A stretch of DNA of 64,000 nt from Phaeosaccion multiseriatum (GCA_965112735.1 OZ218954.1:3162001-3226000), one strand, 5' to 3'. Counted from the first letter of the stretch, positions 23,727 to 53,659 are shown. A program made the numbers and translations. The notes: generated by a model not told the origin, from the sequence alone.

Positions 23727-26700
23727 ATGGGCCGAGCTGCTGCGCTTATAAGTGTGCTGCTCCTCGGGAGTGGTACAGCAAGGTCATTGGCGGCCGAAGT
23801 GTCACTTCCCACGAGTAATTGCACGGGCTTCACAAGTGAGTTCTCCACGCGGAAGGAAGTCAATACAAGCAAGAGAAGAGATGAGAGAGAAAAAGTTTTC
23901 CGCGTTTTCCGGTGTGTTGACTTGCCTTCATGGCTTCTGGCGCCCTGGTGCTGCATATGCTCCTTAAGGACATTGGGCTTCAATTTAACTTCGTCCTCCT
24001 CACCAAGGGAAAACGACGGCAGGATAGAAGAGAAGAGATGAAAGCCTTCCTTCCTGTGTGTTGTTGCTTGCCTTCTTCATGGCTACGAAGGACATTGAGC
24101 TTCACTTTTCCTGCCTCCTCCTCCAAGGGTACTTTCAAGAAAACGTTCCGTCGTTTTCTGCAAGTATCCTTGTCCTCACCCACCGCACTGACAACACGCA
24201 CCAACTCAACTCCTCCACCCCCTCCTCCACAGCGTCGTACGATGCGGATAGCGACACCACCACCTGGACCGCTTCCTCGTCCCTCACCTGTGGCAGCGGC
24301 GGGGCCGTCGGCGTCAGGGACGAGGGCCAATCCTTGATTGTAAGTAGGCCTGGAAGGATGGAGACTTCGTTGCCTGAGCGACGTCTCTGACGCTCCACCC
24401 CTCTCGTACCAATCCCTCCCCCCTACCCTTCCCCAACCAAACAACCACAGATCGACGTTGGCACCTACGACGTCGTCTTTGAGGGCGTAACCTTCTCTGT
24501 CGGCAGCTCCGCTACAAGATCCTGCTCCGGGGGAGCCTCCTTGGACATCATCGGAGACGCGGCGGAGGGGTCGGTCACCTTCAACGGCAGTGGAAGTGGA
24601 ACAGCACTGTTTCTCCGCGGCAACGGTGCCGACATGGACATCAATGTGCCGGCTTTCTTCAACGACTGGGTGAGTTGTCTAAGCAACAACAGCAAAGCCT
24701 CAGCAGGCCTTTGCTTGCTGGCCAACCGCTTGTCTCCTTCCTACCTACCTCACCCCTTGCTTGTCTGCCTTCCTGCCTTGTCTGCCCGCCCTATCGTGCC
24801 TGCCCGCTTTGCTTTGTGCGCACCGTCCGCTCTTCTCTTTGCAGGAAAATGGAGCCGATGCGTCGGCTCAGTCCTCCTGCTCCACCATGCTCACCTTCGG
24901 GTCCGATGCCATCTTCACCGGCATCACAGGCACCGGACTGTCCGCTTTTGAAAGTGAGCAGCAGAGAACTGGGACTGTGTGTATGTGACTCTGAGGAAGG
25001 CGGAACAACAACTGGACTCTGTGTGTGTGTGGTGTGGCCTTGCGGGTGGGGTGGGCCAATGAAATGTTGTTTTTTGTCTTTGCTCACGTTCGAAGCAAAT
25101 GCAAACTCTACCCCCCCTCCCCTTCCCCAGCCACGTGGGAAGTGCTAGGCCGAGCTGCCTTCCACGATGTCGCCACACCGGCCGATCAGCGAGGCACCGG
25201 GCAGCAGTCTCGGTTTGGGACATGCGTGGAGCTCGGCCCCGGTGTAAGTGTGTGCCAGTGCTCCCGTATTTATCTTCACTTACAGCCCTGCCTGCCTCTC
25301 CCCTCTCATTCTTCTCGACTCGAGGTCCCCCGCCATGCCTGTGTATTGTCTTTTCGAAGCCTTCCTTGTTGCTGTTGCTGCTGCTGATGGGGCTAATCTC
25401 AGTTTCAGTGTATTCGCCCTCCGCCGTCCCCACTGCTGCATCTCTGGCTGCTTGCTTGCACTCCTACGCCCTCTTGTGCAGTGGGATGTCGATCTCACCC
25501 CCAAGCCTTGCCCCCTAACCTGCCCTTCTGTCTCATCCGATTTGCAGGTGCCTCTGCCGGCATCCACGGCGAACTACCCTGACCCCATCCTGCCATTTGA
25601 GCTGTGCGAAGACGCCATCTACGCACCCGCACCGTTCGGCGGAATTGATCTTCCCAGCAGTTGCGATGGCATGACAAGTGAGTGATCGAGGAGCGAGGCT
25701 TGCGTGTAATGGAGAGAGAGGAAGAGGAAGAGGAAGGAGTGATTTGAGCGAGGCTGCTGTGGGGGGGGGGGGGGGGGTCAAGCAAGGCGAGGGGAAGTCG
25801 AGACGGGAAGGGGTCATTTTTGCAATCCGCCCCCTTCTTCGCTCATGGGCTGACACACACACCCCGCTGTTTGCTACCCCCTGTGTGCCGCTCGTTCCTT
25901 GCCCTCTCTCTGCCCGGACCAACACCCCCGTCGCTCCTCCACAGCGTCGTACGATGCGGATAGCGACACCACCACCTGGACCGCTTCCTCATCCCTCACC
26001 TGTGGCAGCGGCGAGGCCGGGATCGTCGACGTCCAGGACGAGGGCCAATCCTTGATTGTATGTAGGCCTGGAGGGACGAAGACTTCGTTGCCTGACGTCC
26101 CTGACGCTCCACCCCTCTCGTACCAATCCCTCCCCCCTACCCTTCCCCAACCAAACAACCACAGATCGACGTTGGCACCTACGACGTCATCTTTGAGGGC
26201 GTAACCTTCCTTGTCGGCAGCTTCGCTACATCCTCCTGCTCCGGGGGAGCCTCCTTGGACATCATCGGAGATGCGGCTGAGGGGTCGGTCACCTTCAACG
26301 GCAGTGGAAGTGGAACAGCACTGTTTCTCAACGGCAACGGTGCCGACATGGACATCAATGTGCCGGCTTTCTTCAACGACTGGGTGAGTTGTCTAAGCAA
26401 CAACAGCAAAGCCCCAACAGTCCTTTGCTGGCCAACCGCTTGTCTCCTTCCTTCCTACCTCACCACCTGCTTGTCTGCCTTCTTGCTTTGTATGCCCGCC
26501 CTATCGTGCCTGCCGGCTTTGTTTTGTGCGCACCGTCCGCTGTTCTCTTTGCAGGAATATGGAGCCTTCGCGGCGGCTGAGTCCTCCTGCTCCACCATGC
26601 TCACCTTCGGGTCCGATGCCATCTTCACCGGAATCACGGGCACCGGACTGTTCGCTTTTGAAAGTGAGCAGCAGAGAACTGGGACTGTGTGTATGTGGCC

Positions 26701-29700
26701 TTGAGGAAGATGGGACCACAACAGGCTTTGTGTGTGTGTGATGTGGCCTTGCGGGTGGGGTGGCTGGACCAATGAATTGTTGTTCTTTGTCGTTGCTTGC
26801 TCACGTTCGAAGCAAATGCAAACTCTACCCCCCCTCCCCTTCCCCAGCCACGTGGGAAGTGCAAGGCCGAGCTGCCTTCTACGATGTCGCCATGCCGGCC
26901 GATCAGCAAGGCTCGGGGCAGCAGTCTCGGTTTGGTACATGCGTGGAGCTCGGCCCCGGTGTAAGTGTGTGCCATTGCTCCCGTATGTATCTTCTTTTAC
27001 CGCCCTGCCTGCCTCTCCCCTCTCATTCTTCTCGACTCGAGGTCCCCCGCCATGCCTGTGTATGTCTTTTCGAAGCCTTCCTTGCTGCTGTTGCTGCTGC
27101 TGATGCTGCTGCTTTCAGTTTCAGTGTATTCGCCCTCCGCGTCCCCCTTCTCTCTCTCTGCTTGCTTGCACTCCTACACCCTCTTGTGCAGTGGGATGTC
27201 GATCTCACCCCCAAGCCTTGCCCCCTAACCTGCCCTTCTGTCTCATCCGATTTGCAGGTGCCTCTGCCGGCATCCACGGCGAACTACCCTGACCCCATCC
27301 TGCCATTTGAGCTGTGCGAAGACGCCATCTACACACCGTTCGGCGGAATTGATCTTCCCAGCAGTTGCGATGGCATGACAAGTGAGTGATCGAGGAGCGA
27401 GGCTTGCGTGTAATGGAGAGAGAGGAGGAGGAAGAGGAAGGAGTGATGTGAGCGAGGCTGCTGTGGGGGGAGGGGGGGGGGAGCGAGGAGAAGGGGTCAT
27501 TTTTGCAATCCGCCCTCTTCTTCGCTCATGGGCTGACACACACACCCCGCTGTTTGCCACCCCCTGTGTGCCGCTCGTTCCTTGCCCTCTCTCTGCCCGG
27601 ACCAACACCCCCGTCGCTCCTCCACAGCGTCGTACGATGCGGATAGCGACACCACCACCTGGACCGCTTCCTCATCCCTCACCTGTGGCAGCGGCGAGGC
27701 CGGGATCGTCGACGTCCAGGACGAGGGCCAATCCTTGATTGTATGTAGGCCTGGAGGGACGAAGACTTCGTTGCCTGACGTCCCTGACGCTCCACCCCTC
27801 TCGTACCAATCCCTCCCCCCTACCCTTCCCTAACCAAACAACCACAGATCGACGTTGGCACCTACGACGTCATCTTTGAGGGCGTAACCTTCCTTGTCGG
27901 CAGCTTCGCTACATCCTCCTGCTCCGGGGGAGCCTCCTTGGACATCATCGGAGATGCGGCTGAGGGGTCGGTCACCTTCTACGGCAGTGGTTTTGGAACA
28001 GCACTGTTTCTCAACGGCAACGGTGCCGACATGGACATCAATGTGCCGGCTTTCTTCAACGACTGGGTGAGTTGTCTAAGCAACAACAGCAAAGCCCCAA
28101 CAGTCCTTTGCTGGCCAACCGCTTGTCTGCTTCCTTCCTACCTCACCACCTGCTTGTCTGCCTTCCTGCCTTGTATGCCCGCCCTATCGTGCCTGCCGGC
28201 TTTGTTTTGTGCGCACCGTCCGCTGTTCTCTTTGCAGGAATATGGAGCCTTCGCGGCGGCTGAGTCCTCCTGCTCCACCAAGCTCACCTTCGGGTCCGAT
28301 GCCATCTTCACCGGAATCACGGGCACCGGACTGTCCGCTTCTGAAAGTGAGCAGCAGAGAACTGGGACTGTGTGTATGTGACTCTGAGGAAGGCGGAACA
28401 ACAACTGGGCTCTGTGTGTGTGTGTGGTGCGGCCTTGCCGCTGCGGGTGGGGTGGGCCAATGAATTGTTGTTTTTTGTCTGTGCTCACGTTCGAAGCAAA
28501 TGCAAACTCTACCCCCCCTCCCCTTCCCCAGCCACGTGGGAAGTGCTAGGCCGAGCTGCCTTCTACGATGTCGCCACACCGGCCGATCAGCGAGGCTCGG
28601 GGCAGCAGTCTCGGTTTGGAACATGCGTGGAGCTCGGCCCCGGTGTGAGTGTGTGCCAGTGCTCCCGTATTTATCTTCTTTTACCACCCTGCCTGCCTCT
28701 CCCCTCTCATTCATCTCGACTCGAGGTCCCCCGCCATGCCTGTGTATGTCTTTTCGAAGCCTTCCTTGCTGCTGTTGCTGCTGCTGATGCTGCTGCTTTC
28801 AGTTTCAGTGTATTCGCCCTCCGCCGTCCCCACTGCTGCATCTCTGGCTGCTTGCTTGCACTCCTACGCCCTCTTGTGCAGTGGGATGTCGATCTCACCC
28901 CCAAGCCTTGCCCCCTACCCTGCCCTTCTGTCTCATCCGATTTGCAGGTGCCTCTGCCGGCATCCACGGCGAACTACCCTGACCCCATCCTGCCATTTGA
29001 GCTGTGCGAAGACGCCATCTACGCACCCGCACCGTTCGGCGGAATTGATCTTCCCAGCAGTTGCGATGGCATGACAAGTGAGTGATCGAGGAGCGAGGCT
29101 TGCGTGTAATGGAGAGAGAGGAGGAGGAAGAGGAAGGAGTGATTTGAGCGAGGCTGCTGTGGGGGGGGGGGGGGGGTCAAGCAAGGCGAGGGGAAGTCGA
29201 GACGGGAAGGGGTCATTTTTGCAATCCGCCCTCTTCTTCGCTCATGGGCTGACACACACACCCCGCTGTTTGCTACCCCCTGTGTGCCGCTCGTTCCTTG
29301 CCCTCTCTCTGCCCGGACCAACACCCCCGTCGCTCCTCCACAGCGTCGTACGATGCGGATAGCGACACCACCACCTGGACCGCTTCCTCATCCCTCACCT
29401 GTGGCAGCGGCGAGGCCGAGATCGTCTTCGTCTCGGACGAGAGCCAATCCTTGATTGTAAGTAGGCCTGGAGGGATGAAGACTTCGTCGCCTGACGTCTC
29501 TGACGCTCGCTCCACCCCTCTCGTACCAATCCCTCCCCCCTACCCTTCCCCAACCAAACAACCACAGATCGACGTTGGCACCTACGACGTCGTCTTCAAT
29601 GTCGTAGCCATCAATGTCGGCAGCTTCGCTACATCCTCCTGCTCCGGGGGAGCCTCCTTGGACATCATCGGAGATGCGGCGGAGGGGTCGGTCACCTTCA

Positions 29701-32700
29701 ACGGCGGTGGTTTTGGAGTAGCACTGTCTCTCCTCGGCAACGGTGCCGACGTGGACATCAATGTGCCGGCTTTCTTCAACGACTGGGTGAGTTGTCTAAG
29801 CAACAACAGCAAAGCCCCAACAGTCCTTTGCTGGCCAACCGCTTGTCTCCTTCCTTCCTACCTCACCACCTGCTTGTCTGCCTTCTTGCCTTGTCTGCCC
29901 GCCCTATCGTGCCTGCCCGCTTTGCTTTCGTGCTTTTGTGGGCACCGTCCGCTCTTCTCTTTGCAGGAAAATGGAGCCAATGCGGGGGCTCGGTCCTCCT
30001 GCTCCACCATGCTCACCTTCGCGTCCGATGCCATCTTCACCGGCATCACGGGCACCGGACTGTTCGCTTTTGAAAGTGAGCAGCAGAGAACTGGGACTGT
30101 GTGTATGTGACTCTGAGGAAGGCGGAACAACAACTGGGCTCTGTGTGTGTGTGTGGTGTGGCCTTGCGGGTGGGCTGGGCCAACGAATTGTTGTTCTTTG
30201 TCGTTGCTTGCTCACGTTCGAAGCAAATGCAAACTCTACCCCCCCTCCCCTTCCCCAGCCACGTGGGAAGTGCAAGGCCGAGCTGCCTTCTACGATGTCG
30301 CCATGCCGGCAGATCAGCAAGGCTCGGGGCAGCAGTCTCGGTTTGGAACATGCGTGGAGCTCGGCCCCGGTGTAAGTGTGTGCCATTGCTCCCGTATGTA
30401 TCTTCTTTTACCGCCCTGCCTACCTCTCCCCTCTCATTCTTCTCGACTCGAGGTCCCCCGCCATGCCTGTGTATGTCTTTTCGAAGCCTTCCTTGCTGCG
30501 GTTGCTGATGCTGCTGCTTTCAGTTTCAGTGTATTCGCCCTCCGCCGTCCCCACTGTTGCATCTCTGGCTGCTTGCTTGCACTCCTACGCCCTCTTGTGC
30601 AGTGGGATGTCGATCTCACCCCCAAGCCTTGCCCCCTACCCTGCCCTTCTGTCTCATCCGATTTGCAGGTGCCTCTGCCGGCATCCACGGCGAACTACCC
30701 TGACCCCATCCTGCCATTTGAGCTGTGCGAAGACGCCATGTACGCACCGTTCGACGGAATTGATCTTCCCAGCAGTTGCGATGGCATGACAAGTGAGTGA
30801 TCGAGGAGCGAGGCTTGCGTGTAATATAGAGAGAGGAGGAGGAAGAGGAAGGAGTGATGTGAGCGAGGCTGCTGTTGGGGGGGGGGCGGTCAAGGCGAGG
30901 GGAAGTCGAGAGGGGAAGGGGTCATTTTTGCAATCCGCCCTCTTCTTCGCTCATGGGCTGACACACACACCCCGCTGTTTGCTACCCCCTGTGTGCCGCT
31001 CGTTCCTTGCCCTCTCTCTGCCCGGACCAACACCCCCGTCGCTCCTCCACAGCGTCGTACGATGCGGATAGCGACACCACCACCTGGACCGCTTCCTCAT
31101 CCCTCACCTGTGGCAGCGGCGAGGCCGGGATCGTCGACGTCCAGGACGAGGGCCAATCCTTGATTGTATGTAGGCCTGGAGGGATGAAGACTTCGTTGCC
31201 TGACGTCTCTGACGCTCCACCCCTCTCGTACCAATCCCTCCCCCCTACCCTTCCCCAACCAAACAACCACAGATCGACGTTGGCACCTACGACGTCATCT
31301 TTGAGGGCGTAACCTTCCTTGTCGGCAGCTTCGCTACAAGATCCTGCTCCGGGGGAGCCTCCTTGGACATCATCGGAGTTGCGGCTGAGGGGTCGGTCAC
31401 CTTCAACGGCAGTGGAAGTGGAACAGCACTGTTTCTCAACGGCAACGGTGCCGACATGGACATCAATGTGCCGGCTTTCTTCAACGACTGGGTGAGTTGT
31501 CTAAGCAACAACAGCAAAGCCCCAACAGTCCTTTGCTGGCCAACCGCTTGTCTCCTTCCTTCCTACCTCACCACCTGCTTGTCTGCCTTCTTGCTTTGTA
31601 TGCCCGCCCTATCGTGCCTGCCGGCTTTGTTTTGTGCGCACCGTCCGCTCTTCTCTTTGCAGGAATATGGAGCCTTTGCGGCGGCTGAGTCCTCCTGCTC
31701 CACCATGCTCACCTTCGGGTCCGATGCCATCTTCACCGGAATCACGGGCACCGGACTGTTCGCTTTTGAAAGTGAGCAGCAGAGAACTGGGACTGTGTGT
31801 ATGTGGCCTTGAGGAAGATGGGACCACAACAGGCTTTGTGTGTGTGTGGTGTGGCTTTGCGGGTGGGGTGGCTGGGCCAATGAATTGTTGTTCTTTGTCG
31901 TTGCTTGGCTGCTCACGTTCGAAGCAAATGCAAACTCTACCCCCCCTCCCCTTCCCCAGCCACGTGGGAAGTGCTAGGCCGAGCTGCCTTCCACGATGTC
32001 GCCACACCGGCCGATCAGCAAGGCTCGGGGCAGCAGTCTCGGTTTGGAACATGCGTGGAGCTCGGCCCCGGTGTAAGTGTGTGCCATTGCTCCCGTATTT
32101 ATCTTCTTTTACCGCCCTGCCTGCCTCTCCCCTCTCATTCTTCTCGACTCGAGGTCCCCCGCCATGCCTGTGTATGTCTTTTCGAAGCCTTCCTTGCTGC
32201 TGTTGCTGCTGCTGATGCTGCTGCTTTCAGTTTCAGTGTATTCGCCCTCCGCCGTCCCCACTGCTGCATCTCTGGCTGCTTGCTTGCACTCCTACGCCCT
32301 CTTGTGCAGTGGGATGTCGATCTCACCCCCAAGCCTTGCCCCCTACCCTGCCCTTCTGTCTCATCCGATTTGCAGGTGCCTCTGCCGGCATCCACGGCGA
32401 GCTACCCTGACCCCATCCTGCCATTTGAGCTGTGCGAAGACGCCATCTACGCACCCGAAACCTCTCTTCCCACACCCACTCCCACTCCTCCCCCGGTGGC
32501 ACCTCCCACGGGCGTCAACTGCGCCTCCTTGGGGTGGGTAGGTAGCTGTGGTGCCTTCACCGACGCTGGCTCGTGCAACTGCTGGGCAGGATCTGCCTTC
32601 GCCTGCTCGTGGTCCGGTAGCAGCTGCGGCACTGGCGGTGGTGGCGGTGGCCCAGCGCCCACTCCCCCTCCTTTGACAACCCCCACTCCTCCTACGGTGA

Positions 32701-33549
32701 GTCAAGCAGTCGCTGTGTCGCACTGACTCGGGTCAACAAGCTCATTTCACTCTCCCTCTTGTTTCTATACAAAGGTCGCATCCACCCCCGCCCCTGTTGC
32801 CCCCATGACCGAGACCACAACCACGGCGTACATTGCCCCGGATGAACCCACAACCACGGCGTACATTGCCCCGGATGAACCCACAACCACATCGTACGTT
32901 GCCCCGGATGAATCCACAACGCCGGCGCCCGTTGCCCCCATGACCGAGGCCACAACGCCGGCGCCCGTTGCCCCGGATGTGACCCCCGAGGGCGAGTGCA
33001 TGGTGCCCTCGGCCTGCGCAGCCACTGAGGCCGACATTGAGCAGCTGGCTCTGTCCCACAAGTGCATCACCGTGGACACCACCTGCGGTACTGACGATGC
33101 GCCCGTCAACTGCAACATGTTCGGCCTGGGCCAGGACTGCAGGTGAGGAGATGTGGGTGTGGCGGGGGTATCATAAAGGAGAGGATTCGTCCCTATCCTT
33201 GGCATTGTCTCATGCTCTTCGTTTTTTGGCTCCTCGTCGTTGCTGTGTTGTTCATCACCTACTCAGGGGCTGCTACATGTCGTGCGAGGGAGCCATGATG
33301 CACCTCGCCGCCTACCCGTCCACGCCAGACTCGGAATTCTTCTTCTGCCCTTCCACGGGCCTGACCTACGACATGTGCACCGACGAAACCCCCCCCGATG
33401 ACACGGGCGATTGTGTGTGCGACGGCTTTGGCGAGTCTTGCTTCATGGACAGCTCATGTGTGTTGGGTGAACTCGGATGCAACGTCCGCGGCATACTGGC
33501 TTGCCGCTTCTGTGGGTTCGGTGCCTACTCCGATATCGCATGCCCTTAG
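23727..33549 (+). CDS. Secreted tandem-cassette protein A (~1450-1560 aa): signal peptide, 5 repeat domains, Pro/Thr linkers, Cys-rich C-terminal modules
   Basis: Signal exon 23727-23835 (MGRAAALISVLLLGSGTARSLAA). Five-exon cassettes start at 24233, 25945, 27628, 29344, 31053; cassette 1 exons are 24233-24339, 24451-24669, 24845-24953, 25131-25243, 25548 (or 25482)-25677. Tail exons 32376-32696, 32775-33142, 33267-33549 (TAG). All GT-AG and in frame; no TM or GPI signal seen. Confidence 0.88.
24233..32455 (+). repeat. Five ~1.7-kb exon+intron cassette repeats in gene A
   Basis: Units 24233-25677, 25945-27381, 27628-29077, 29344-30792, 31053-~32455 share both exon and intron sequence. Confidence 0.95.
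32805..32985 (+). repeat. 33-bp coding tandem repeats (TTTAYIAPDEP / TTPAPVAPMTE), mucin-like linker
   Basis: In-frame 11-aa repeats; a paralogous copy lies at ~45560-45740. Confidence 0.85.
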
Positions 33550-33725
33550 ACAACCGTGTTGCACTTCGTCTGTTAGCTACTGTCGTTGTACTCTGGGTGG
33601 TGTTGTCGTTGTAAGTGTTCGTCGCTGAACACCTTGATAACCAGCTGTAGTAGCAAAAACAGTGTTAATTTCAAGTGGCATTTCAAACGCGAGTTAGCTA
33701 AGTGATTAATGAAGGATAGCTTTAC

Positions 33726-35620
33726 GGGCGTTGGTGATTCGTATAGCTCGTTGATTTCTATCACTTGCCTGCCATTTGTGCGGATGTGGAGAGAGACAGT
33801 ATACCCATCCTCTACCCTCCCACTCATCCATTCACCCACCCCCTCTCACCCACCCACCCTTCCTTGCAACCATGCCCTTTAACAAGCACAGATCAATCAA
33901 GTGCACATAGTGCGGCAAGGGGGCCTCACCCCCCTCCTCCGCTTGGCCAAGTTGGGTACCCGAGCCCCATACGTGAGCAGATGCGCCGCCATGTGTGTTT
34001 CCAATCTGGCCTGTAACCGCCAAAACCGCCTGCCCTTTGTAGAGGCCGGAGGATTGTCACATTTGGCCGCCATGGCGTCTGAGGATGGGCGGTTGGAGGT
34101 GCAGAGAGGAGCGGCGCTTGCCCTCTACAACCTTTCCGGGGCGGTGGCCAATCAGGTTGATGTGGTGGAGGGGAGGGAGGGAGGGACGGTGGATGGATGA
34201 ATGGATGTGGGTGACTGGGGGGCAACCCAACCAAGGCCAACATGAACCCTTTTTCTCTCTCTTCTCTCTCCTCTCTCGTCCCCCCACTCCCGTCCAAACC
34301 CACCCTCACCCCTCCTCCCCTCCCAACCCAGGTGCCAATGGCCAAAGCGGGTGTGTGCGGCTCCATGGTGGCACTGACCAAGTGTCCCGACGTGGACTGC
34401 AAGCGATATGCGGTCATGGCACTCGCCAACCTCGCTGCCAACTGTGAAACACGCGAGACGGCAACGCGTTCAGGGGGGGCTCCCGGCTGCCGTGGGGCTG
34501 TTATCCGACGCCGACGGAGAGTGCAGGAGGTAGGTAGTCAACCTGTTCTCCCTTGCTCTCCCCTCTCTCGCTCGCTCTCTCTCTCTCTCTTTCTCTTTGC
34601 CTCTCTCTCGCTCTCTCTCTCTCTTTCTCTTTGCCTCTCTCTCGCTCTCGCCCCCCTCTTTGTCTTGCTCACCCTATACTCGCTTTCTCTCTCCTCCCTT
34701 TTTTATATCTCTCTCTCCCTCGCTATCTCTGCTTTCCTCAACCTTCTTGCCTGCCCTTCCCACTCCCACAACTCCCACCACCACCACATCACCACCATCA
34801 CCACCACCACCACATCACCAACAGATACGCCGCCAGAGCCGTCGCCAACATGGCCAATGAGCCGCTGTGCAAACCGGTTTGGTTGTGCATGGAGGCCTCG
34901 TGCCCTTGTTAAAGTTGGCGGCGTCCGTGAGCGCGGATGACCAACGGCACGCCCTCATGGCACTTGCCAACCTCGCTGCCAGTGAAGGGAATCACGCGCA
35001 ACTCACGTCGAAAGGTGGGGCTCGGGGAATTCCGTCACATTCACTCACTCACTCACTCACTCACTCCCTCACTCACTTAATCACTCACTCACTCAACTCA
35101 CCCACTCACAGACTCACCCACTCACTCAATCAGTCACTCACTCACTCACTTACTCACTCACTTACCCACTCGCTCACTCACTCACTCACTCACTCACTCA
35201 CTCACTCACTCACTCACTCACTCACTCACTCACTCACCAACCCCCTCACTCCCTCACCCACATACTGCCACCCCCACCGCCCTCCACGGCCATCCACTAC
35301 CATCCCCCCCCCACAGCCATCCACTGCCATCAGGTGGTCTAGACGAGCTCGTTCGCCTCGCCAACTCCCTGGAGCCTGACGTGAGGGAACTTGCAGCCTT
35401 TGCGCTGGCCAATGCAACGGGCAATGCCGACTATCTCGACGTGGTGGGCCACAAGGGAGGCATCGTGCCCCTCATTGGCCTCGCGGTACGATCCGTCAAC
35501 TGTCTACCTGCGTACCTACCTGTTTGCCTGCCCTTCCTACCCGTATGCCTGCCTATACCCCATGCACTACATGCCTGCCCTACGCCCATACGCCGCACCC
35601 ATATGCCTGCCTATTGATGT
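33726..35620 (+). pseudogene. Duplicated internal fragment of the ARM gene (copy of ~7869-9987; four exons with introns)
   Basis: Colinear with exons 8044-8307, 8499-8695, 9073-9263 and 9701-9852, introns included. +1 frameshift in the G-run at ~34475 and a 1-nt deletion at ~34866 (gagccgctgtgc vs gagccgcgtgtgc). Starts and ends inside introns. Confidence 0.92.
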
Positions 35621-35867
35621 CGGCCGTGCGATGATATCCCCATTCGAGAGGTGGAACTGGAAAGCGACAGACACGTAGTCCATGCCATCGGCGTCGATAC
35701 GAAGCTCCACACCACCGCCCTCCTCTTCTACTGCTACGGCCGCCTTATGCCATCCAGCAGCTGTCCCAAAAAAAAAACTTTGAACGTGTGGCGTTAAGTG
35801 CCATCTATGGCCAAACCGTTGCTGACATATTTTTCGGTGCTGCTGCCGCATGGAGCGAAGCCGCAGC

Positions 35868-35904
<37 letters not shown>

Positions 35905-36185
35905 CAGTATCATTTCCTGATTACATGGCTACCTCAGAACCTTGTCACGGGCCGACTGTATTGCCACGAGCTGAAATCGCGGAGCGAGCAGGCCAGTTCG
36001 AGATGAGATGACATCAACCCTCCCTCTTTTTTTTTTCCCTTCCCTCCTTCCTTCCCTCCCTCCCTCACTCCTTCCCTCCTCCCTCTCCCCCTCCTTCCGC
36101 ACTCTCCTGCGCGACCATTGTTCTTCTTTACCGTTTCCGATAAGTCAACAAATAACGCCGTCGTGGCGGCACAGTTTTTTCACCC

Positions 36186-36260
36186 CAACCCCTGATACAC
36201 TATCCGCTATCCGCTATCGGCCGGCGGCCGATAGCGCGCTATCGAGAATGTGGGCGATAG
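36186..36260 (-). mobile_element. Inverted, internally deleted and truncated copy of element family 1
   Basis: caacccctgatacactatccgctatccgctatcggccggcggccgatagcgcgctatcgagaatgtgggcgatag is the reverse complement of the two ends of 16943-17246 joined together. Confidence 0.85.
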
Positions 36261-36664
36261 TTTCTTCGCTGGTCCTCGCCAAACCTCCCAGGGAGTGCGC
36301 GACCATTGTTCTTTACCGTCTCCGACAAGTCAACAAATAATGCTTCTCCGCCGGAGCTCTACGCTGGTCCTCGTTTTCCGCCCGCCGCACTCTCCTCCGC
36401 ACCAAACCTCCAGGGAAAGTTGCGCTTCCATTGTTCTTTACCGTCTCCGATAAGTCAACAAATAATGCTTCTCCGCCTCCCGCCAGATCACGCCTCCTCA
36501 GAAACAAACCGACGAGGTTTCGTCTCCTGCGATATCCTCCTGCTGAACTTATCTGTTGGTTCGGGGCGAGGGGAACTGGGCGCAACACCAGCAGGGAAGT
36601 CACTTTCCCTCTTACAATTAAAAAAGGGCCTGGAAGAAGGATAACGAAGAAGAACAAGCAAGAG

Positions 36665-42600: not shown

Positions 42601-45600
42601 AGTCCTTTGCTGGCCAACCGCTTGTCTGCTTCCTTCCTACCTCACCACCTGCTTTGTCTGCCTTCTTGCCTTGTCTGCCCGCCCTATCGTGCCTGCCCGC
42701 TTTGCTTTGTGGGCACCGTCCGCTCTTCTCTTTGCAGGAAAATGGAGCCGATGCGTCGGCTCAGTCCTCCTGCTCCACCATGCTCACCTTCGGGTCCGAT
42801 GCCATCTTCACAGGCATCACGGGCACCGGACTGTCCGCTTTTGAAAGTGAGCAGCAGAGAACTGGGACTGTGTATATGTGACTCTGAGGAAGGCGGAACA
42901 GCAACTGGGCTCTGTGTGTGTGTGGTGTGGCCTTGCGGGTGGGGTGGGCCAATGAAGGGTTGTTCTTTGTCGTTGCTTGCTCACGTTCGAAGCAAATGCA
43001 AACTCTACCCCCCCTCCCCTTCCCCAGCCACGTGGGAAGTGCTAGGCCGAGCTGCCTTCTACGATGTCGCGACACCGGCCGATCAGCGAGGCTCGGGGCA
43101 GCAGTCTCGGTTTGGAACGTGCGTGGAGCTCGGCCCCGGTGTAAGTGTGTGCCATTGCTCCCGTATGTATCTTCACTTACCGCCCTGCCTGCCTCTCCCC
43201 TCTCATTCATCTCGACTCGAGGTCCCCCGCCATGCCTGTGTATGTCTTTTCGAAGCCTTCCTTGCTGCGGTTGCTTGCTGATGCTGCTGCTTTCAGTTTC
43301 AGTGTATTCGCCCTCCGCGTCCCCACTGCTGCACATCTCTGGCTGCTTGCAGGCACTCCTACGCCCTCTTGTGCAGTGGGATGTCGATCTCACCCCCAAG
43401 CCTTGCCCCCTACCCTGCCCTTCTGTCTCCTCCGATTTGCAGGTGCCTACACCGTCATCCTCGGCGAACTACCCTAACCCCATCCTGCCATTTGAGCTGT
43501 GCGAAGACGCCATCTACGCACCCGCACCGTTCGGCGGAATTGAACTTCCCAGCAGTTGCGATGGCATGACAAGTGAGTGATCGAGGAGCGAGGCCTGCGT
43601 GTAATGGAGAGAGAGGAGGAGGAAGAGGAAGGAGTGATGTGAGCGAGGCTGCTGTGGGGGGGGGGGGGGGGGGGTCAAGCAAGGCGAGGGGAAGTCGAGA
43701 CGGGAAGGGGTCATTTTTCCAATCCGCCCCCTTCTTCGCTCATGGGCTGACACACACACCCCGCTGTTTGCTACCCCCTGTGTGCCGCTCGTTCCTTGCC
43801 CTCTCTCTGCCCGGACCAACACCCCCGTCGCTCCTCCACAGCGTCGTACGATGCGGATAGCGACACCACCACCTGGACCGCTTCCTCATCCCTCACCTGT
43901 GGCAGCGGCGAGGCCGGGATCGTCTTCGTCTCGGACGAGGGCCAATCCTTGATTGTAAGTAGTAGGCCTGGAGGGACGAAGACTTCGTTGCCTGACGTCC
44001 CTGACGCTCCACCCCTCTCGTACCAATCCCTCCCCCCTACCCTTCCCCAACCAAACAACCACAGATCGACGTTGGCACCTACGACGTCGTCTTCAATGTC
44101 GTAGCCTTCTCTGTCGGCAGCTTCGCTTCATCCTCCTGCTCCGGGGGAGCCTCCTTGGACATCATCGGAGATGCGGCCGAGGGGTCGGTCACCTTCAACG
44201 GCAGTGGTTTTGCAGCACTGTCTCTCAACGGCAACGGTGCCGACGTGGACATCAATGTGCCGGCTTTCTTCAACGACTGGGTGAGTTGTCTAAGCAACAA
44301 CAGCAAAGCCCCAACAGTCCTTTGCTGGCCAACCGCTTGTCTGCTTCCTTCCTACCTCACCACCTGCTTGTGCCTTCCTGCCTTGTCTGCCCGCCCTATC
44401 GTGTCTGCCCGCTTTGCTTTGTGGGCACCGTCCGCTCTTCTCTTTGCAGGAAAATGGAGCCTTTGCGGCGGCTGAGTCCTCCTGCTCCACCATGCTCACC
44501 TTCGGGTCCGATGCCATCTTCACCGGAATCACGGGCACCGGACTGTTCGCTTTTGAGAGTGAGCAGCAGAGAACTGGGACTGTGTGTATGTGACTCTGAG
44601 GAAGGCGGAACAACAACTGGGCTCTGTGTGTGTGTGGTGTGGCCTTGCGGGTGGGGTGGGCCAATGAAGTGTTGTTCTTTGTCTGTGCTCACGTTCGAAG
44701 CAAATGCAAACTCTACCCCCCCTCCCCTTCCCCAGCCACGTGGGAAGTGCTAGGCCGAGCTGCCTTCTACGATGTCGCCACACCGGCCGATCAGCAAGGC
44801 TCGGGGCAGCAGTCTCGGTTTGGAACATGCGTGGAGCTCGGCCCCGGTGTAAGTGTGTGCCATTGCTCCCGTATGCATCTTCACTTACAGCCCTGCCTGC
44901 CTCTCCCCTCTCATTCATCTCGACTCGAGGTCCCCCGCCATGCCTGTGTATGCTCCTTGCTGCTGTTGCTGCTGGCTGCTGATGCGGCTAATCTCAGTTT
45001 CAGTGTATTCGCCCTCCGCCGTCCCCACTGTTGCATCTCTGGCTGCTTGCAGGCACTCCTACGCCCTCTTGTGCAGTGGGACGTCGATCTCACCCCCAAG
45101 CCTTGCCCCCTACCCTGCCCTTCTGTCTCATCCGATTTGCAGGTGCCTCTGCCGGCATCCACGGACATCCTGCCATTTGAGCTGTGCGAAGACGCCATCT
45201 ACGCACCCGAAACCTCTCTTCCCAAACCCACTCCCACTCCTGCCCCGGTGGCACCTCCCACGGGCGTCAATTGCGCTTCCTTGGGGTGGGTAGGTAGCTG
45301 TGGTGCCTTCACCGACGCTGGCTCGTGCAACTGCTGGGCAGGATCTGCCTTCGCCTGCTCGTGGTCCGGTAGCAGCTGCGGCACTGGCGGTGGTGGCGGT
45401 GGCCCAGCGCCCACTCCCCCTCCTTTGACAACCCCCACTCCTCCTACGGTGAGTCAAGCAGTCGCTGTGTCGCACTGAGTCGTGTCAACAAGCTCATTAT
45501 TTCACTCTCCCTCTTGTTTCTATACAAAGGTCGCATCCACCCCCGCCCCTGTTGCCCCCATGACCGAGACCACAACCACGGCGTACATTGCCCCGGATGA

Positions 45601-46304
45601 ACCCACAACCACGTCGTACATTGCCCCGGATGAACCCACAACCACATCGTACGTTGCCCCGGATGAATCCACAACGCCGGCGCCCGTTGCCCCCATGACC
45701 GAGGCCACAACGCCGGCGCCCGTTGCCCCGGATGTGACCCCCGAGGGCGAGTGCATGGTGCCCTCGGCCTGCGCAGCCACTGAGGCCGACATTGAGCAGC
45801 TGGCTCTGTCCCACAAGTGCATCACCGTGGACACCACCTGCGGTACTGACGATGCGCCCGTCAACTGCAACATGTTCGGCCTGGGCCAGGACTGCAGGTG
45901 AGGAGATGTGGGTGTGAAGGGGGTATCATAAAGGAGAGGATTCGTCCCTATCCTTGGCATTGTCTCATGCTCTTCGTTTTTTGGCTCCTCGTCGTTGCTT
46001 TGTTGTTCATCACCTACTCAGGGGCTGCTACATGTCGTGCGAGGGAGCCATGATGCACCTCGCCGCCTACCCGTCCACGCCAGACTCAGAATTCTTCTTC
46101 TGCCCTTCCACGGGCCTGACCTACGACATGTGCACCGACGAAACCCCCCCCGATGACACGGGCGATTGTGTGTGCGACGGCTTTGGCGAGTCTTGCTTCA
46201 TGGACAGCTCATGTGTGTTGGGTGACCTCGGATGCAACGTCCGCAACATACTGGCTTGCCGCTTCTGTGGGTTCGGTGCCTACTCCGATATCGCATGCCC
46301 TTAG
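36665..46304 (+). CDS. Secreted tandem-cassette protein B: signal peptide, 5 repeat domains, C-terminus nearly identical to gene A
   Basis: Signal exon 36665-36773. Cassettes 37060-38503, 38762-40200, 40446-41876, 42137-43572, 43842-~45207. Tail exons 45143-45448, 45530-45897, 46022-46304 (TAG). Frame intact. Confidence 0.88.
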
Positions 46305-46493
46305 ACAACCGTGTTGCACTTCGTCTGTTACTGTCGTTGTACTCCAGCTGGTGTTGTCGTTGTAAGTGTTCGTCGCTGAACACCTTGATCCCAGCTGTAG
46401 CAGCAAAGAGAGTGTTAAGTTCGTATTTTTCAAGGCGCATTTAAACGCAAGTTAGTTAAGTGATTAATGAAGGATAGCTTTGTTTTTGTGACT

Positions 46494-47800
46494 CGAGGGC
46501 TAAGGGTGGCGGAGGTGCTTCAAGGCGCTGAGGTGGGCATGTGCACCACGCGCTGTGAGGAGGAAGAGGTTATTGGTTGTTAAAGGTGTGATTGGTTGTC
46601 TTGACTTGACCTGCCCTGATCTGACCTGACCGACCGATCGACCGACCGACTGACTGAAGTGAAGGGGTGTAATTGTACTTGATGTTTGCATATTCTGGAG
46701 CTTACTTTACAGTGTACAGTATACACTGCGTCTTTGAGGAAAGGACGGTAGATCGCGAAGAATGAGTGCGTGCGTGCGTGCGTGCGTGCGACTTTTATCA
46801 GAGTAAGTAGGCCGTCCACCAAGCAAGGCCACGCATGTCCAAACCAAGGTAGCGATTCGTATGTACATTTTGATTACTTAAGGACATAATTTACTCACTC
46901 ACTTCTTCTCTTTCTCTCATCCAATCATGCCTCGCTTTCCTTTCCTCGCTAGTTACCTGGCCTGACTGGCTGACTGACTGACTGACTCAGCGAGTGAATG
47001 AGTGAGTGAGTGAGTGAGTGAGTGAGTGAGTGAGTAAGTGAGTAAGTGAGTGAGTGAGTAAGTGAGTGAGTGAGTGAGTGAGTAAGTGAGTGAGTAAGTG
47101 AGTGAGTGAGTGAGTGAGTGAGTGAGTGAGTGAGTGAGTGAGTGAGTGAGTGAGTGAGTGAGTGAGTGAGTGAGTGAGTGAGTGAGTGAGTGAGTGAGTG
47201 AGTGGTGAGGGAGTGAGGGAGCGAGTGAGTGAGTGAGTGAGTGAGTGAGTGAGTGAGTGAGTGAGTGAGTGAGTGAGTGAGTGAGTGAGTGAGTGAGTGA
47301 GTGAGTGAGTGAGTGAGTGAGTGAGTGAGTGAGTGAGTGAGTGAGTGAGTGAGTGAGTGAGTGAGTGAGGGAGTGGTGAGGGAGTGAGGGAGTGAGGGAG
47401 TGAGGGAGTGAAGGAGTGAGTGAGTGAGTGAGTGTGTGAGTGAGTGAGTGAGTGAGTGAGTGAGTGAGTGAGTGAGTGAGTGAGTGAGTGAGTGAGTGAG
47501 TGAGTGAGTGAGTGAGTGAGTGAGTGAGTGAGTGAGTGAGTGAGTGAGTGAGTGAGTGAGTGAGTGAGTGAGTGAGTGAGTGAGTGAGTGAGTGAGTGAG
47601 TGAGTGAGTGAGTGAGTGAGTGAGTGAGTGAGTGAGTGAGTGAGTGAGTGAGTGAGTGAGTGAGTGAGTGAGTGAGTGAGTGAGTGAGTGAGTGAGTGAG
47701 TGAGTGAGTGAGTGAGTGAGTGAGTGAGTGAGTGAGTGAGTGAGTGAGTGAGTGAGTGAGTGAGTGAGTGAGTGAGTGAGTGAGTGAGTGAGTGAGTGAG
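46494..47800. repeat. ~500-bp downstream block plus (GAGT)n microsatellite, duplicated after gene C
   Basis: cgagggctaag...ggtgcttcaaggcgctgagg... through the GAGT array (~46993-47800) matches 53842-54688. Confidence 0.9.
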
Positions 47801-48130
47801 CTGTGGTCCGGAAGTCCAAAGTCCAGCAGATCAGCAGATGATGGTTCGAATTGATGCCATCAGATAGACAAGGGATGAAGTCCAATTGAGATAGACTGCT
47901 TCTTCCCCGCTGTCCCACTGCCCCTTACTTTATTTTTTACTTGAAGTAGTGCGGAACCATCTCCTCCGGGAGAGGTGGATGGGGGGACCATCAAATTCTA
48001 TACGCAAATTTTCACTTTTGTTCTTCCCCTGGTGAACTGATCTTTAAGTTGGGGGCGATGGGAGCTGGGCGCAGCAGCAGGGAAGTCACTTTCCCTCTTT
48101 GCAATAGAAAAGGGCCTGGAAGAGCAAGAC

Positions 48131-51100
48131 ATGGGGCGAGCTGGGCTTGTAAGCGTGCTGCTCCTCGGGAGTGGTACAGCAATGTCATTGGCCGCCGAAG
48201 TGCCACTTCCCACGAGTGATTGCACGGGCTTCACAAGTGAGTTCCCCACACAGAAGGAATACAAGAGAAGAGAGGAGAGAGTCTTTGCGCTTGAGTCTGA
48301 ACTTGCAGTAGCCTTCCGCCTGTCGTGTGTTCCCTTCATGATGGCTAGATAAGTAAACGAAGGTTCTCCTCCTCACCAAGTCAAGGATAGCTACAGAATC
48401 TCTCTCCCTCCAACTCAACTCCTCCACCCCCTCCTCCACAGCGTCGTACGATGCGGACCGCGACACCACCACCTGGACCGCTTCCTCATCCCTCACTTGT
48501 GGCAGCGGCGAGGCCGTCTCCGTCCAGGACGAGGGCCAATCCTTGATTGTAAGTAGGCCTGGAGGGATGAAGACTTCGTTGCCTGACGTCTCTGACGCTG
48601 CCCTCCACCCCTCTCGTACCCCGCCCTCCCCCCTACCCTCCTTCCCCAACCGAACAACCACAGATCGACGTTGGCACCTACGACGTCGTCTTCGATGGCG
48701 TAACCTTCGATATCGGCAGCTTCGCTACATCCTCCTGCTCCGGGGGAGCCTCCTTGGACATCATCGGAGATGCGGCGGAGGGGTCGGTCACCTTCAACGG
48801 CAGTGGAAGTGAAACAGCACTGTCTCTCCGCGGCAACGGTGCCGACGTGGACGTCAATGTGCCGGCTTTCTTCAACGACTGGGTGAGTTGTCTAACAACA
48901 GGAGCAAAGCCCCAGCAGTCCTTGCTGACCAACCGCTTGTCTGCCTTCTTGCCTTGTCTGCTCGCCCTATCGTGCCTGCTCGCTTTGCTTTGTGGGCACC
49001 GTCTGCTCTTCGCTTTGCAGAGAAATGGAGCCTTTGCGGCGGCTGAGTCCTCATGCCCCACCAAGCTCACCTTCGGGTCCGATGCCATCTTCACCGGAAT
49101 CACGCGCACCGGATTGTCAGGTTTTGAAAGTGAGCAGCAGAGAACTGGGACTGTGTGTACCTTGAGGAAGATGGGACCACAACAGGCTCTGTGTATTTGC
49201 GGGTGGGGTGGCTGGGCCAAGAAATGAATTGGTCACTTTCTTTGTCGTTGCTTTTGCTCACGTTCGATGCAAATGCAAACTCCTACCCCCCTCCCCTTCC
49301 CCAGCCACCTGGGAAGTGCAAGGCCGAGCTGCCTTCTACAATGTCGCCGAACCTGTCGATCAGATAGGCATCGGGCAGCAGTCTCGGTTTGGAACATGCG
49401 TGGAGCTCGGCCCCGGTGTAAGTGTGTGCCATTGCTCCCGTATGTATCTTCTTTTACCGCCCTGCCGATGATCTCTTTTCGAAGTTGCTGTGTTGCTGCT
49501 GCTGATGCTGCTGCTTTCAGTTTCGGTGTATTCGCCCTCCGCCGTCCCCACTGCTGCACATCTCTGGCTGCTGGCTTGCACTCCTACGCCCTCTTGTGCA
49601 GTGGGATGTCGATCTCACCCCCAAGCCTTGCCCCCTACCCTGCCCTTCTGTCTCATCCGAATTGCAGGTGCCTCTGCCAGCATCCACGGCCTTCTCTGAC
49701 GCCATCCTGCCATTTGAGCTGTGCGAAGACGCCATCTACGCACCCGTGTCCGTCGGAATTGATCTTCCCAACGGTTGCGGTGGGATGACAAGTGAGTGAT
49801 CGAGGAGTGAGACTTGCGTGTAATAGAGAGAGAGGAGGAGGAAGAGGAAGGAGGAAGGGAGAGAGGCTGCTGGATGTGTGTGTGTGGGGGGGGGAAGGGG
49901 TCATTTTTCCAATCCGCCCTCTTCTTCGCTCATGGGCTGACACACACACCCCGCTGTTTGCTACCCCCTGTGTGCCGCTCGTTCCTTGCCCTCTCTCTGC
50001 CCGGACCAACACCCCCGTCCTCCACAGAGTCGTACGATGCGGATAGCGACACCACCACCTGGACCGCTTCCTCATCCCTCACCTGTGGCAGCCTAGAGAC
50101 CGAGGTCGTCAGCGTCAGGGAGGAGGGCCAATCCTTGATTGTAAGCAGGCCTGGAGGGACGAAGACTTCGTTGCCTGATGTCTCTGACGCTCCACCCCTC
50201 TCGTACCCCTCCCCCCTACCCTTTCCCAACCGAACAACCACAGATCGACGTTGGCACCTACGACGTCGTCTTCAATGTCGTAACCTTTGATGTCGGCAGC
50301 TTCGCTACAAGATCCTGCTCCGGGGGAGCCTCCTTGGACATCATCGGAGATGCGGCGGTGGGGTCGGTCACCTTCAACGGCAGTGGAAGTGGAACAGCAC
50401 TGTCTCTCAGCGGAAACGGTGCCGACGTGGACATCAATGTGCCGGCTTTCTTCAACGACTGGGTGAGTTGTCAAAGCAACAACAGCAATGCCCAAGCAGT
50501 CCTTTGCTGACCAACCGCTTGTCTGCTTCCTTCCTACCTCACCACCTCCTGCTTGTCAGCTTCCTTGCTTTGTCTGCTTCCTTCCAACCTCACCACCTGC
50601 TTGTCTGCCTTCTTGCCTTGTCTGCCCGCCCTATCGTGCCTGCTCGCTTTGCTTTGTGGGCACCTTCCGCTCTTCTCTTTGCAGGAAAATGGAGCCGATG
50701 CGTCGGCGCAGTCCTCATGCTCCACCATGCTCACCTTCGGGTCCGATGCCATCTTCACCGGAATCACGGGCACCGGAGTGTCCGCTTTTGAAAGTGAGCA
50801 GCAGAGAACTGGGACTGTGTGTATGTGGCCTTGAGGAAGGCGGAACAACAACTGGGCTCTGTGTGTGGTGTGGTGTGGCCTTGCTTGCGGGTGGCTGGGG
50901 TGGGTGGGCCAACGAATTGTTGTTCTTTGTCGTTGCTTATTGCTCACGTTCGAAGCAAATGCAAACACCTACCCCCCTCCCCTTCCCCAGCCACGTGGGA
51001 AGTGCAAGGCCGAGCTGCCTTCCACGATGTCGCCACACCGGCCGATCAGCGAGGCACGGGGCAGCAGTCTCGGTTTGGAACATGCGTGGAGCTCGGCCCC

Positions 51101-53659
51101 GGTGTAAGTGTGTGCCATTGCTCCCGTATGTATCTTCTTTTACCGCCCTGCCTGCCTCTCCCCTCTCATTCTTCTCGACTCGATGTCCCCTTCCTTGCTG
51201 CTGTTCCTGCTTGCTGATGCTGCTGCTGTCAGTTTCAGTGTATTCGCCCTCCGCGTCCCCACTGCTGCATCTCTGGCTGCTTGCTGGCACTCCTACGCCC
51301 TCTTGTGCAGTGGGATGTCGATCTCACCCCCAAACCTTGCCCCCTAACCTGCCCTTCTGTCTCATCCGATTTGCAGGTGCCTCTGCCGGCATCCACGGCG
51401 AACTACCCTGACCCCATCCTGCCGTTTGAGCTGTGCGAAGACGCCATCTACACACCGTTCGACGGAATTGATCTTCCCAGCGGTTGCGATGGGATGACAC
51501 GTGAGTGATCGAGGAGCGAGACTTGCGTGTAATGGAGAGAGAGGAGGAGGAAGAGGAAGGAGTGATGTGAGGCTGCTGTGGGATTTTTCTTTTTCCAATC
51601 CGCCCTTTTCTTCGCTCATGCCTTGACACACACACACCGCTCACTCATTGCGCTGTTTGCTACCCCTGTGTGCCGCTCGTTCCTTGCCCTCTCTCTGCCC
51701 GGACCAACACCCCCGTCGCTCCTCCACAGCGTCGTACGATGCGGATAGCGACACCACCACCTGGACCGCTTCCTCGTCCCTCACCTGTGGCAGCGGCGAA
51801 ACCGTCGACGTCAAGGACGAGGGCCAATCCTTGATTGTAAGTAGGCCTGGAGGGATGAAAACTTCGTCGCCTGACGTCTCTGACGCTTCACCCCTCTCGT
51901 ACCCCTCCCCCCTACCCTTCCCCAACCAAACAACCACAGATCGACGTTAGCACCTACGACGTCGTCTTCGATGGCGTAACCATCAATGTCGGCAGCTTCG
52001 CTACACCCTCCTGCTCCGGGGGAGCCACCTTGGACATCATCGGAGATGCGGCGGAGGGGTCGGTCACCTTCAACGGCAGTTTTGGAAGTGGAACACCACT
52101 GACTCTCAGCGGCAACGGTGCCGACGTGGACATCAATGTGCCGGCTTTCTTCAACAACTGGGTGAGTTGTCTAAACAACAGCAAAGCCCCAGGAGTCCTT
52201 TGCTGGCCAACCGCTTGTCTACTTCCTTCCTACCTCACCACCTGCTTGTCTGCCTTCTTGCCTTGTCTGCCCGCCCTATCGTGTCTGCCCGCTTTGCTTT
52301 GTGCGCACCGTCCGCTCTTCTCTTTGCAGGAAAATGGACCCAATGCGGCGGCTCAGTCCTCATGCTCCACCAAGCTCACCTTCGGGTCCGATGCCATCTT
52401 CACGAGAATGACGGGCACCGGACTTTTTGCTATTGAAAGTGAGCAACAGAGAACTGGGACTGTGTGTATGTGGCCTTGAGGAAGATGGGACCACAACAGG
52501 CTTTGTGTGTGTGTGATGTGGCCTTGCGGGTGGGGTGGCTGGGCCAATGAATTGTTGTTCTTTGTCGTTGCTTGCTCACGTTCGAAGCAAATGCAAACTC
52601 CTACCACCCTCCCCTTCCCCAGCCACCTGGGAAGTGCAAGGCCGAGCTGCCTTCTACGATGTCGCCAGACCGGTCAATCAGATAGGCACGGGGCAGCAGT
52701 CTCGGTTTGGAACATGCGTGGAGCTCGGCCCCGGTGTAAGTGTGTACCATTGCTCCCGTGTGTATCTTCACTTACAGCCCTGCCTGCCTCTCCCCTCTCA
52801 TTCTTCTCGACTCGATGTCCCCCGCCATGCCTGTGTGTGTCTTTTGAAGCCTTCCTTGCTGCTGTTCCTGCTTGCTGATGCTGCTGCTTTCAGTTTCAGT
52901 GTATTCGCCCTCCGCCGTCCCCACTGCTGCATCTCTGGCTGCTTGCAGGCACTCCTACGCCCTCTTGTGCAGTGGGATGTCGATCTCACCCCCAAGCCTT
53001 GCCCCCTACCCTGCCCTTCTGTCTCATCCGATTTGCAGGTGCCTCTGCCAGCATCAACGGCGAACTACCCTGACCCCATCCTGCCATTTGAGCTGTGCGA
53101 AGACGCCATCTACGCCCCCGAAACCTCTCTTCCCACACCCACTCCCACCTCCCCCCCTACCCCTCCTTCCGTCGCTACCCTTCCCCCCACATCCACTTCC
53201 ACCTCTCCGCCTGTGACTACCCCCACGGAGGTGGACTGTCCCGCCCTGGGGTGGGCAGACAGCTGTGGCGCCTACACCGACGCTGATTCGTGCAACTGCT
53301 GGACCGACTCCTCCTTCGCATGCTCGTGGACCGACGGCAGCTGCAGCACTGGCGGTGGCGTGTGCGAGGGAGTGGCCGCCTGCGGTGTGGGTGAGCAGAC
53401 CTGCGTCTATGTTCCTGGTGGCTGCCTGGGCATGAGCGGCTGTGTGGCGGAAACCAGTTGCATGTACTGCGGCTTCGGTTCCTACGATGCATGCCCCACA
53501 GGTGACATCGATCCCAACGATCCGTGTGCCGATGTCGGAGCCTGTGGCGTGGGTGGGCAGACGTGTGAAACCGCCACCTGCCCGGGCCCCGTAGGGTGCA
53601 TTGGCGACGAGCCCTGCAGGTACTGCGGATTCGGGACATTCGAGGAGTGCAGCAAGTAG
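48131..53659 (+). CDS. Secreted tandem-cassette protein C: signal peptide, 3 repeat domains, distinct Cys-rich C-terminus
   Basis: Signal exon 48131-48236. Cassettes 48442-49791, 50028-51500, 51730-~53118. Terminal exon 53039-53659 with a P/T linker, a CPALGWADSC module and two C...CxYCGFG modules. Confidence 0.87.

Follow-up and report, generated by a model that had tools for sequence, protein, structure and literature searches.

Hypervariable codons in three tandem genes of repeated five-exon modules from the alga Phaeosaccion multiseriatum: candidate secreted recognition or adhesion proteins

Why should a gene repeat a whole block of five exons several times over, with nearly identical introns, and yet let particular codons in every copy switch among chemically different residues? 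The question is raised by positions 23727-53659 (plus strand) of a 64,000-nucleotide stretch of DNA from Phaeosaccion multiseriatum (GCA_965112735.1 OZ218954.1:3162001-3226000), referred to here as the window. Three intact tandem genes, A, B and C, lie in this part of the window, from the ATG of gene A at 23727 to the stop codon of gene C, which finishes at 53659. An initial annotation of this DNA had proposed that they encode secreted proteins made of hypervariable units with a role in recognition or adhesion. Having followed up that proposal computationally, we find selection for amino-acid replacement at a small set of codons to be supported, and consider it probable, though well short of certain, that the genes encode secreted, cysteine-braced, beta-strand-rich modular recognition or adhesion proteins, whose hypervariable modules are reshuffled by recombination and are under selection for change.

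The repeated structure was evident from several directions. Self-BLAST of window positions 23000-54500 revealed a period of ~1.7 kb and a 9.8-kb duplication between genes A and B at 93% identity (23992-33723 vs 36827-46481), while a scan for the 26-base motif that opens the first module exon returned exactly 13 occurrences, grouped 5+5+3. The 13 units were aligned with MAFFT and the five exons of unit A1 were projected onto the others. Every unit contains exons a (107, 110 or 113 nt), b (216, 219 or 222 nt), c (109 nt), d (113 nt) and e (124, 127 or 130 nt), and for every exon projected the acceptor is AG and the donor GT. Both boundaries of the module are in phase 1, as is the donor of the gene's first exon, and the phase of each exon type is identical across all 13 modules. 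It comprises 226 residues, with five cysteines invariant in 13/13 units and a sixth in the 10 non-terminal units. Motif scan, projection and spliced open reading frames (ORFs) together bear out the arrangement first described, three tandem genes with five, five and three units of a ~1.7-kb five-exon module, with exact limits. The variant motif strings quoted in the initial annotation were all found in the 13-unit protein alignment, and its description of a near-identical framework with fixed cysteine positions and closely similar introns also holds, the introns differing by 6.5% on average. A coding gene on the minus strand was rejected, as splice sites and frames are conserved on the plus strand only.

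In each of the three genes, the first exon carries a putative signal peptide, and the encoded proteins would therefore be secreted, as had been suggested; this rests on reading the sequence of that exon. A C-terminal hydrophobic stretch is absent from all three proteins. The tails share a Pro/Thr linker, a common Cys-rich module and a Cys-rich end with the motif C-x-[YF]-C-G-F-G, and those of genes A and B also contain 11-residue Thr-rich repeats, encoded in the gene A tail by a 33-bp tandem repeat. A separate observation concerns unit A4, whose introns are all multiples of 3 (111, 180, 183 and 297 nt). The frame is open from exon a through intron b to exon c (254 codons) and open again from exon d to exon e, such that intron retention in this unit would leave the protein untruncated until intron c.

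Among the exons, every net length difference is a multiple of 3, as had been noted from the outset, but this holds for just 14 of the 45 gap blocks in the introns; all 72 exons across the 13 units keep intact frames. The three are real, intact paralogous genes, probably of a lineage-specific family. Their frames also bear on the possibility that the locus is not expressed as modelled, either because the array is never transcribed or because the assembly has gone wrong at a repeat. In favour of such an explanation, the search for reads found no RNA run; the runs that contain the locus consist entirely of short DNA unitigs, show no splice joint and may be the data from which the assembly was made. 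Against it stand the exons with their intact frames, GT-AG sites and exclusively in-frame length changes, set among introns full of out-of-frame indels, together with the read evidence described below. We therefore regard non-expression or artefact as very unlikely.

The locus is contained in four public runs from one sample, which were identified as DNA because their unitigs cover the introns of gene C. Segments of gene C specific to single units are matched by unitigs with 0 mismatches at single-copy depth (~100 in run X1), and this speaks against a gross assembly artefact, a concern that the initial annotation had itself raised. The order and number of units lie beyond the reach of short unitigs. 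One unitig in run X1 (depth 105, shorter side 30 letters) leads from unit C2 straight to the equivalent position in unit C3 (50872 to 52518), skipping 1645 bases; it could represent a hybrid unit elsewhere in the genome, a haplotype one unit shorter, or an artefact of the repeat graph.

The evidence that carries our interpretation comes from the distribution of variation within the modules. Over the 78 unit pairs, the mean Nei-Gojobori proportions of nonsynonymous (pN) and synonymous (pS) differences were 0.0685 and 0.0786, respectively, beside an intron divergence of 0.0647. The pN/pS ratio of the whole unit is thus ~0.87, and silent sites agree with introns. GY94 codon site models were coded in Python, and the code was validated by an M0 likelihood of -2505.87, the same as that of IQ-TREE. 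Comparison of models M1a and M2a gave a likelihood ratio test (LRT) statistic of 138.7 on one global tree, with 8% of codons at an omega of 9.7, and of 140.9 on five local trees (each from one exon with its flanking introns), with 8.8% at an omega of 10.3. The comparison of M7 with M8, a check proposed in the initial annotation, gave 125.9 on one global tree, with 10% of codons at an omega of 7.8.

Recombination inflates such models, and the local trees correct for this only between exons. Since recombination is clearly present here, the claim of selection is carried by a tree-free test, in which the extra base states at each site among the 13 copies are counted independently of any genealogy. 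Introns show 0.259 states per site and third codon positions 0.281. Twelve codons have at least three extra states at positions 1 and 2, where adjacent pairs of intron sites would predict 2.7 (p = 2.5e-5), and seven have at least four, where 0.68 would be predicted. These 12 hot codons average 1.875 states per site, ~7 times the intron level, yet silent sites up to two codons away from them remain at baseline (0.31 at third positions; 0.23 synonymous variants per codon). The replacements at hot codons are chemically radical, including D/F/G/S, Q/R/S/K, S/L/D/N, D/F/N/L, T/M/E/R and R/Q/I. A mutation hotspot or old imported tracts would lift silent variation too, and replacement selection thus explains the pattern better. 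Both pairs of site models and the tree-free test, including the comparison of exons with introns that had been called for, support selection for amino-acid replacement at these alternating hypervariable codons, as first proposed. Mutagenesis by a system resembling a diversity-generating retroelement, or by a hotspot, was rejected, given the absence of a base-specific pattern, the confinement of variation to codon positions 1-2 and the normal behaviour of neighbouring silent sites.

The same figures allow a plainer explanation to be weighed, namely that the proteins are structural components of the wall or matrix made of young, near-neutral tandem repeats, in which the variable sites are unconstrained surface residues with no part in ligand recognition. 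The whole-unit pN/pS ratio and framework codons that change barely more slowly than introns are in keeping with this, and a Pro/Thr-rich, mucin-like tail and many cysteines would suit a matrix protein. Neutral sites cannot outpace introns, however, as the 12 hot codons do while the adjacent silent sites do not, and lack of constraint sits poorly with replacements as radical as D/F/G/S, S/L/D/N or T/M/E/R. On balance, we consider a purely structural role unlikely.

The units are recombination mosaics. Recombination across units was significant by the pairwise homoplasy index (PHI) test (p < 0.001), incompatibility affects 52% of informative site pairs, most nodes of the whole-unit tree have bootstrap values of just 12-46%, and the five local trees are discordant. 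Haplotypes of individual patches are common to different genes; for instance, one exon-c haplotype occurs in units A1, B1, B3, B4 and C2. Between the tails of genes A and B, pS is 0.0125 and pN 0.0112, with ~2.5% divergence in their introns, whereas modules at matching positions of the two genes differ with a pS of 0.065, five times that of the tails, and a pN of 0.060. As matching modules are far more diverged than the tails, the arrays are being reshuffled by recombination or conversion faster than point mutation alters the rest of the gene. Divergence along the A/B duplication as a whole is very uneven, with nearly identical tails (32376-33549 vs 45143-46304), modules at ~93% identity and 5' ends at 84-91%, which points to recent conversion of the tail.

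Such mosaicism raises the concern that gene conversion has itself produced the signal, with short tracts from divergent family members outside the window importing old differences that mimic an omega above 1. Recombination is indeed pervasive, and exon a of unit B1 (37060-37172) has 11 base differences within 56 bases, mostly multi-base codon changes unique to this unit, a cluster that resembles a short tract converted from a paralog of greater divergence. There are also hints of further family members outside the window: unitigs over 53252-53445, in the gene C tail, carry 7 mismatches at 1.7 times single-copy depth, and summed depth across the module exons reaches 25-30 times single copy. Imported tracts would nevertheless bring silent differences with them, and the silent sites beside the hot codons are at baseline; moreover, the tree-free count needs no genealogy. 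Conversion as the source of the apparent selection is in our judgement distinctly improbable.

The initial annotation went further and placed the variable sites on one exposed face of a beta-solenoid. Sites with at least three residues form 7 pairs at a spacing of i/i+2 where 2.9 would be expected (p = 0.013), with no enrichment at a spacing of 1 or 3, and about two thirds of the neighbours of variable sites are invariant Gly, Ala, Val, Leu, Phe, Ile or Ser. Variability along the module has a period of ~28 residues (family-wise p of 0.03 for the raw profile and 0.009 for the smoothed one). This spacing and period would suit side chains facing outwards from consecutive beta-strands of a coiled repeat, but the evidence is indirect. 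Protein-language-model look-alikes in the ESM Atlas were weak, at 0.81 or below, and the few from named families include three of beta-solenoid type at 0.70-0.74; together with the h-x-h-x-G/D strings and the period, they are indirect hints of a possible right-handed parallel beta-helix of the pectin-lyase-like kind. The alternation noted at the outset is borne out, and a single exposed face is a weakly supported possibility.

Searches for relatives used single exons (35-73 aa), tails, or read-throughs with intron-coded inserts as queries. No model in Pfam or NCBIfam matched any exon, either type of tail, or two read-throughs of unit A4 that contain no stop. When a profile of exon b was run against 1.84 billion representative proteins, 6 matches were returned, all of them spurious short motifs amplified by repeats or low complexity; the best two were a bacterial cadherin-like repeat protein and a repeat-rich homeodomain protein. 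Sequence searches of the PDB gave noise only, neither metagenome contigs nor viral contigs yielded a match, and the last exon of gene C, which encodes its tail, found none in a word-indexed protein search. A transposon or viral origin was rejected as no match supported it. The likeness to 'polymorphic outer membrane protein/adhesin-like' proteins that had been suggested in the initial annotation was not upheld by the Pfam and NCBIfam searches or by the exon-b profile. The hidden Markov models of the Pmp repeat itself (PF02415, TIGR01376) did not match the exons, tails or A4 read-throughs at E-values up to 10, and in the 13 units, read directly, G-G-A-S occurs just once in every 226 residues, with no FxxN partner at regular intervals.

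Besides the inflation of the site models and the missing RNA and splice joints, several results weigh against a recognition protein with selected, surface-exposed variable sites. No homologue or domain match was detectable outside the locus with these exon-sized queries, although annotated proteins from relatives of this alga may be missing from the libraries. Constraint on the framework codons is mild, with 0.20 states per site at positions 1 and 2 against 0.26 in introns, a level resembling that of very young duplicates. Codons 89 and 90, both among the 12 hot ones, adjoin an indel where the alignment is uncertain. Lastly, AlphaFold2 gave a predicted local distance difference test (pLDDT) score of 37 for the A4 read-through of exons a, b and c (243 aa, of which 97 are intron-coded) and of 51 for exon b with the 13-row alignment, both of low confidence.

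Taken with these reservations, a secreted recognition or adhesion protein remains the interpretation that we favour, and its evolution may be pictured as follows. Because the five-exon cassette begins and ends in phase 1, additions and losses of modules are frame-safe, and unequal crossing-over could add or remove whole modules with the reading frame kept. Recombination and gene conversion among the 13 modules would hold introns and framework codons ~93-95% alike while shuffling variant patches between modules and genes, and selection for amino-acid change would act on about 12-15 codons in each 226-residue module, the candidates being alignment codons 26, 29, 31, 49, 54, 61, 89, 90, 96, 118, 120, 122, 155, 165 and 170. 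Most hot codons adjoin invariant Gly, Ala or hydrophobic residues and several lie in h-x-h-x strings, as might be expected of outward side chains on beta-strands. Each protein would thereby line up three to five candidate binding modules, differing from one another, on a tail rich in Pro/Thr and Cys that appears to have no membrane anchor. We infer that the protein serves in recognition or adhesion outside the cell, as a multivalent binder of variable ligands, which might be microbes, glycans or partner cells. Secretion, a fold resembling a beta-solenoid, exposure of the variable sites and binding are all predicted features of this scheme.

Diversity could in principle also be generated at the RNA level. 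As modules run from phase 1 to phase 1 and the phases of each exon type are equal in all 13, module skipping or cross-module splicing, from one exon to the next exon type in a later module, would keep the frame and might yield chimeric modules and a Dscam-like repertoire. We regard such use as speculative and rather improbable; if true, combinatorial splicing would allow one gene to give rise to many different recognition proteins in an alga.

The coordinates of the genes, units and tails are collected in Table 1. The DNA around them shows further signs of duplication. Just 3' of gene A, positions 33723-35620 are a ~1.9-kb copy, at 87-94% identity, of 7866-9987, part of an armadillo-repeat gene 25 kb upstream; the 3' flank of gene A has thus been replaced by a segmental copy. 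Genes B and C have common 3' flanks (46494-47259 vs 53842-54688; 85-96% identity) that include a (GAGT)n microsatellite, 809 bp long after gene B (46992-47800) and ~270 bp after gene C (54420-54688). Directly 5' of the three start codons, ~100-200 bp are conserved at 78-84% identity (23498-23705, 36430-36642 and 48025-48123) and may be a shared promoter or 5' untranslated region element. On the minus strand, positions 57766-58548 hold an exon with the LOV-type photosensor motif N-C-R-F-L-Q-G, part of an unrelated neighbouring gene.

Table 1. Features of the three tandem genes, in window coordinates.
Feature	Position	Strand	Description
Gene A	23727-33549	+	28 exons, 1450 aa; signal-peptide exon, units A1-A5, Pro/Thr-rich and Cys-rich tail; spliced ORF without internal stop
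Signal-peptide exon, gene A	23727-23835	+	Phase-1 donor; M-G-R, hydrophobic core, S-L-A before A-E; putative, read from sequence
Unit A1	24233-25677	+	Exons a 24233-24339, b 24451-24669, c 24845-24953, d 25131-25243, e 25548-25677
Unit A2	25945-27381	+	Five exons
Unit A3	27628-29077	+	Five exons
Unit A4	29344-30792	+	Five exons
Unit A5	31053-32696	+	Exon e continues into tail (32376-32696)
Gene A tail	32376-33549	+	Exons 32376-32696, 32775-33142, 33267-33549; Pro/Thr linker, Cys-rich module, Thr-rich repeats, Cys-rich end
Gene B	36665-46304	+	28 exons, 1442 aa; signal-peptide exon, units B1-B5, tail of gene A type; intact spliced ORF
Signal-peptide exons, genes B and C	36665-36773 (B), 48131-48236 (C)	+	Counterparts of that of gene A
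Unit B1	37060-38503	+	Exon a the most divergent of 13, with clustered multi-base codon changes
Unit B2	38762-40200	+	
Unit B3	40446-41876	+	
Unit B4	42137-43572	+	
Unit B5	43842-45448	+	Exon e continues into tail
Gene B tail	45143-46304	+	
Gene C	48131-53659	+	16 exons, 875 aa; signal-peptide exon, units C1-C3, different Cys-rich tail ending C-R-Y-C-G-F-G; intact spliced ORF
Unit C1	48442-49791	+	
Unit C2	50028-51500	+	
Unit C3 and gene C tail	51730-53659	+	Last exon 53039-53659

The initial annotation knew of no described gene of this kind, which proved too strong a statement, as exon-cassette shuffling with positive selection, the closest published parallel in principle, has been described for the ROCO-LRR and NB-ARC-TPR candidate immune receptors of Ectocarpus (Zambounis et al. 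2012, PMC3341825; also PMC11378527). What does set the present genes apart is an unrelated scaffold and a cassette of five exons. The two systems resemble each other in belonging to stramenopile algae, in the duplication and shuffling of frame-preserving exon cassettes within tandem gene clusters, and in site-model evidence for positive selection at individual repeat positions, which in the receptors are positions predicted to be exposed. In the receptors, however, a single 72-nt exon encodes each leucine-rich repeat (LRR) or tetratricopeptide repeat (TPR), and the proteins are located inside the cell and carry ROC-COR or NB-ARC signalling domains, whereas here a 1.7-kb cassette of five exons encodes a 226-residue, cysteine-containing module behind a putative signal peptide. 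Pfam revealed no LRR or TPR linked to a ROC-COR, kinase or NB-ARC domain, and the spliced proteins consist of signal peptide, modules and a Cys/Pro/Thr-rich tail.

The variable surfaces of LRR proteins, such as plant PGIP and R proteins and the variable lymphocyte receptors (VLRs) of lampreys, offer a second parallel. In them, too, residues that vary in alternation along beta-strands are set in a constant scaffold, with selection favouring new binding specificities, although in the present case the fold and the binding are predictions, and the LxxLxLxxN motif is absent. VLR diversity arises by somatic assembly, whereas the diversity described here is encoded in the germline and arrayed along a single polypeptide. 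With the chlamydial Pmp/POMP repeat the modules have in common a Gly/Ala/Ser-rich beta-strand character and one G-G-A-S and one T-F-N-G string per unit; they lack the repeated GGA[ILV]/FxxN pairs and the autotransporter domain, and are eukaryotic, intron-rich and Cys-rich. The fungal Als and Flo adhesins are secreted, wall-associated proteins whose repeats vary by unequal recombination and which carry a Ser/Thr/Pro-rich stalk, but their repeats are short, single-exon and mostly part of the stalk. The modules described here are large, cysteine-rich, probably folded and encoded by several exons, with focused hypervariable codons.

The means by which algae beyond the plant lineage recognise microbes, viruses, mates or surfaces are poorly understood. 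The published candidates from stramenopile algae are intracellular LRR/TPR receptors made from shuffled single-repeat exons. The locus of P. multiseriatum would add an extracellular counterpart on an unrelated scaffold, duplicated as entire modules of five exons. The dozen or so hot codons in each module provide concrete residues for binding tests, and the 13 natural variants a ready panel of specificities. Should the pattern recur across families of this genome, it would point to a general means of germline diversification by cassette amplification and gene conversion.

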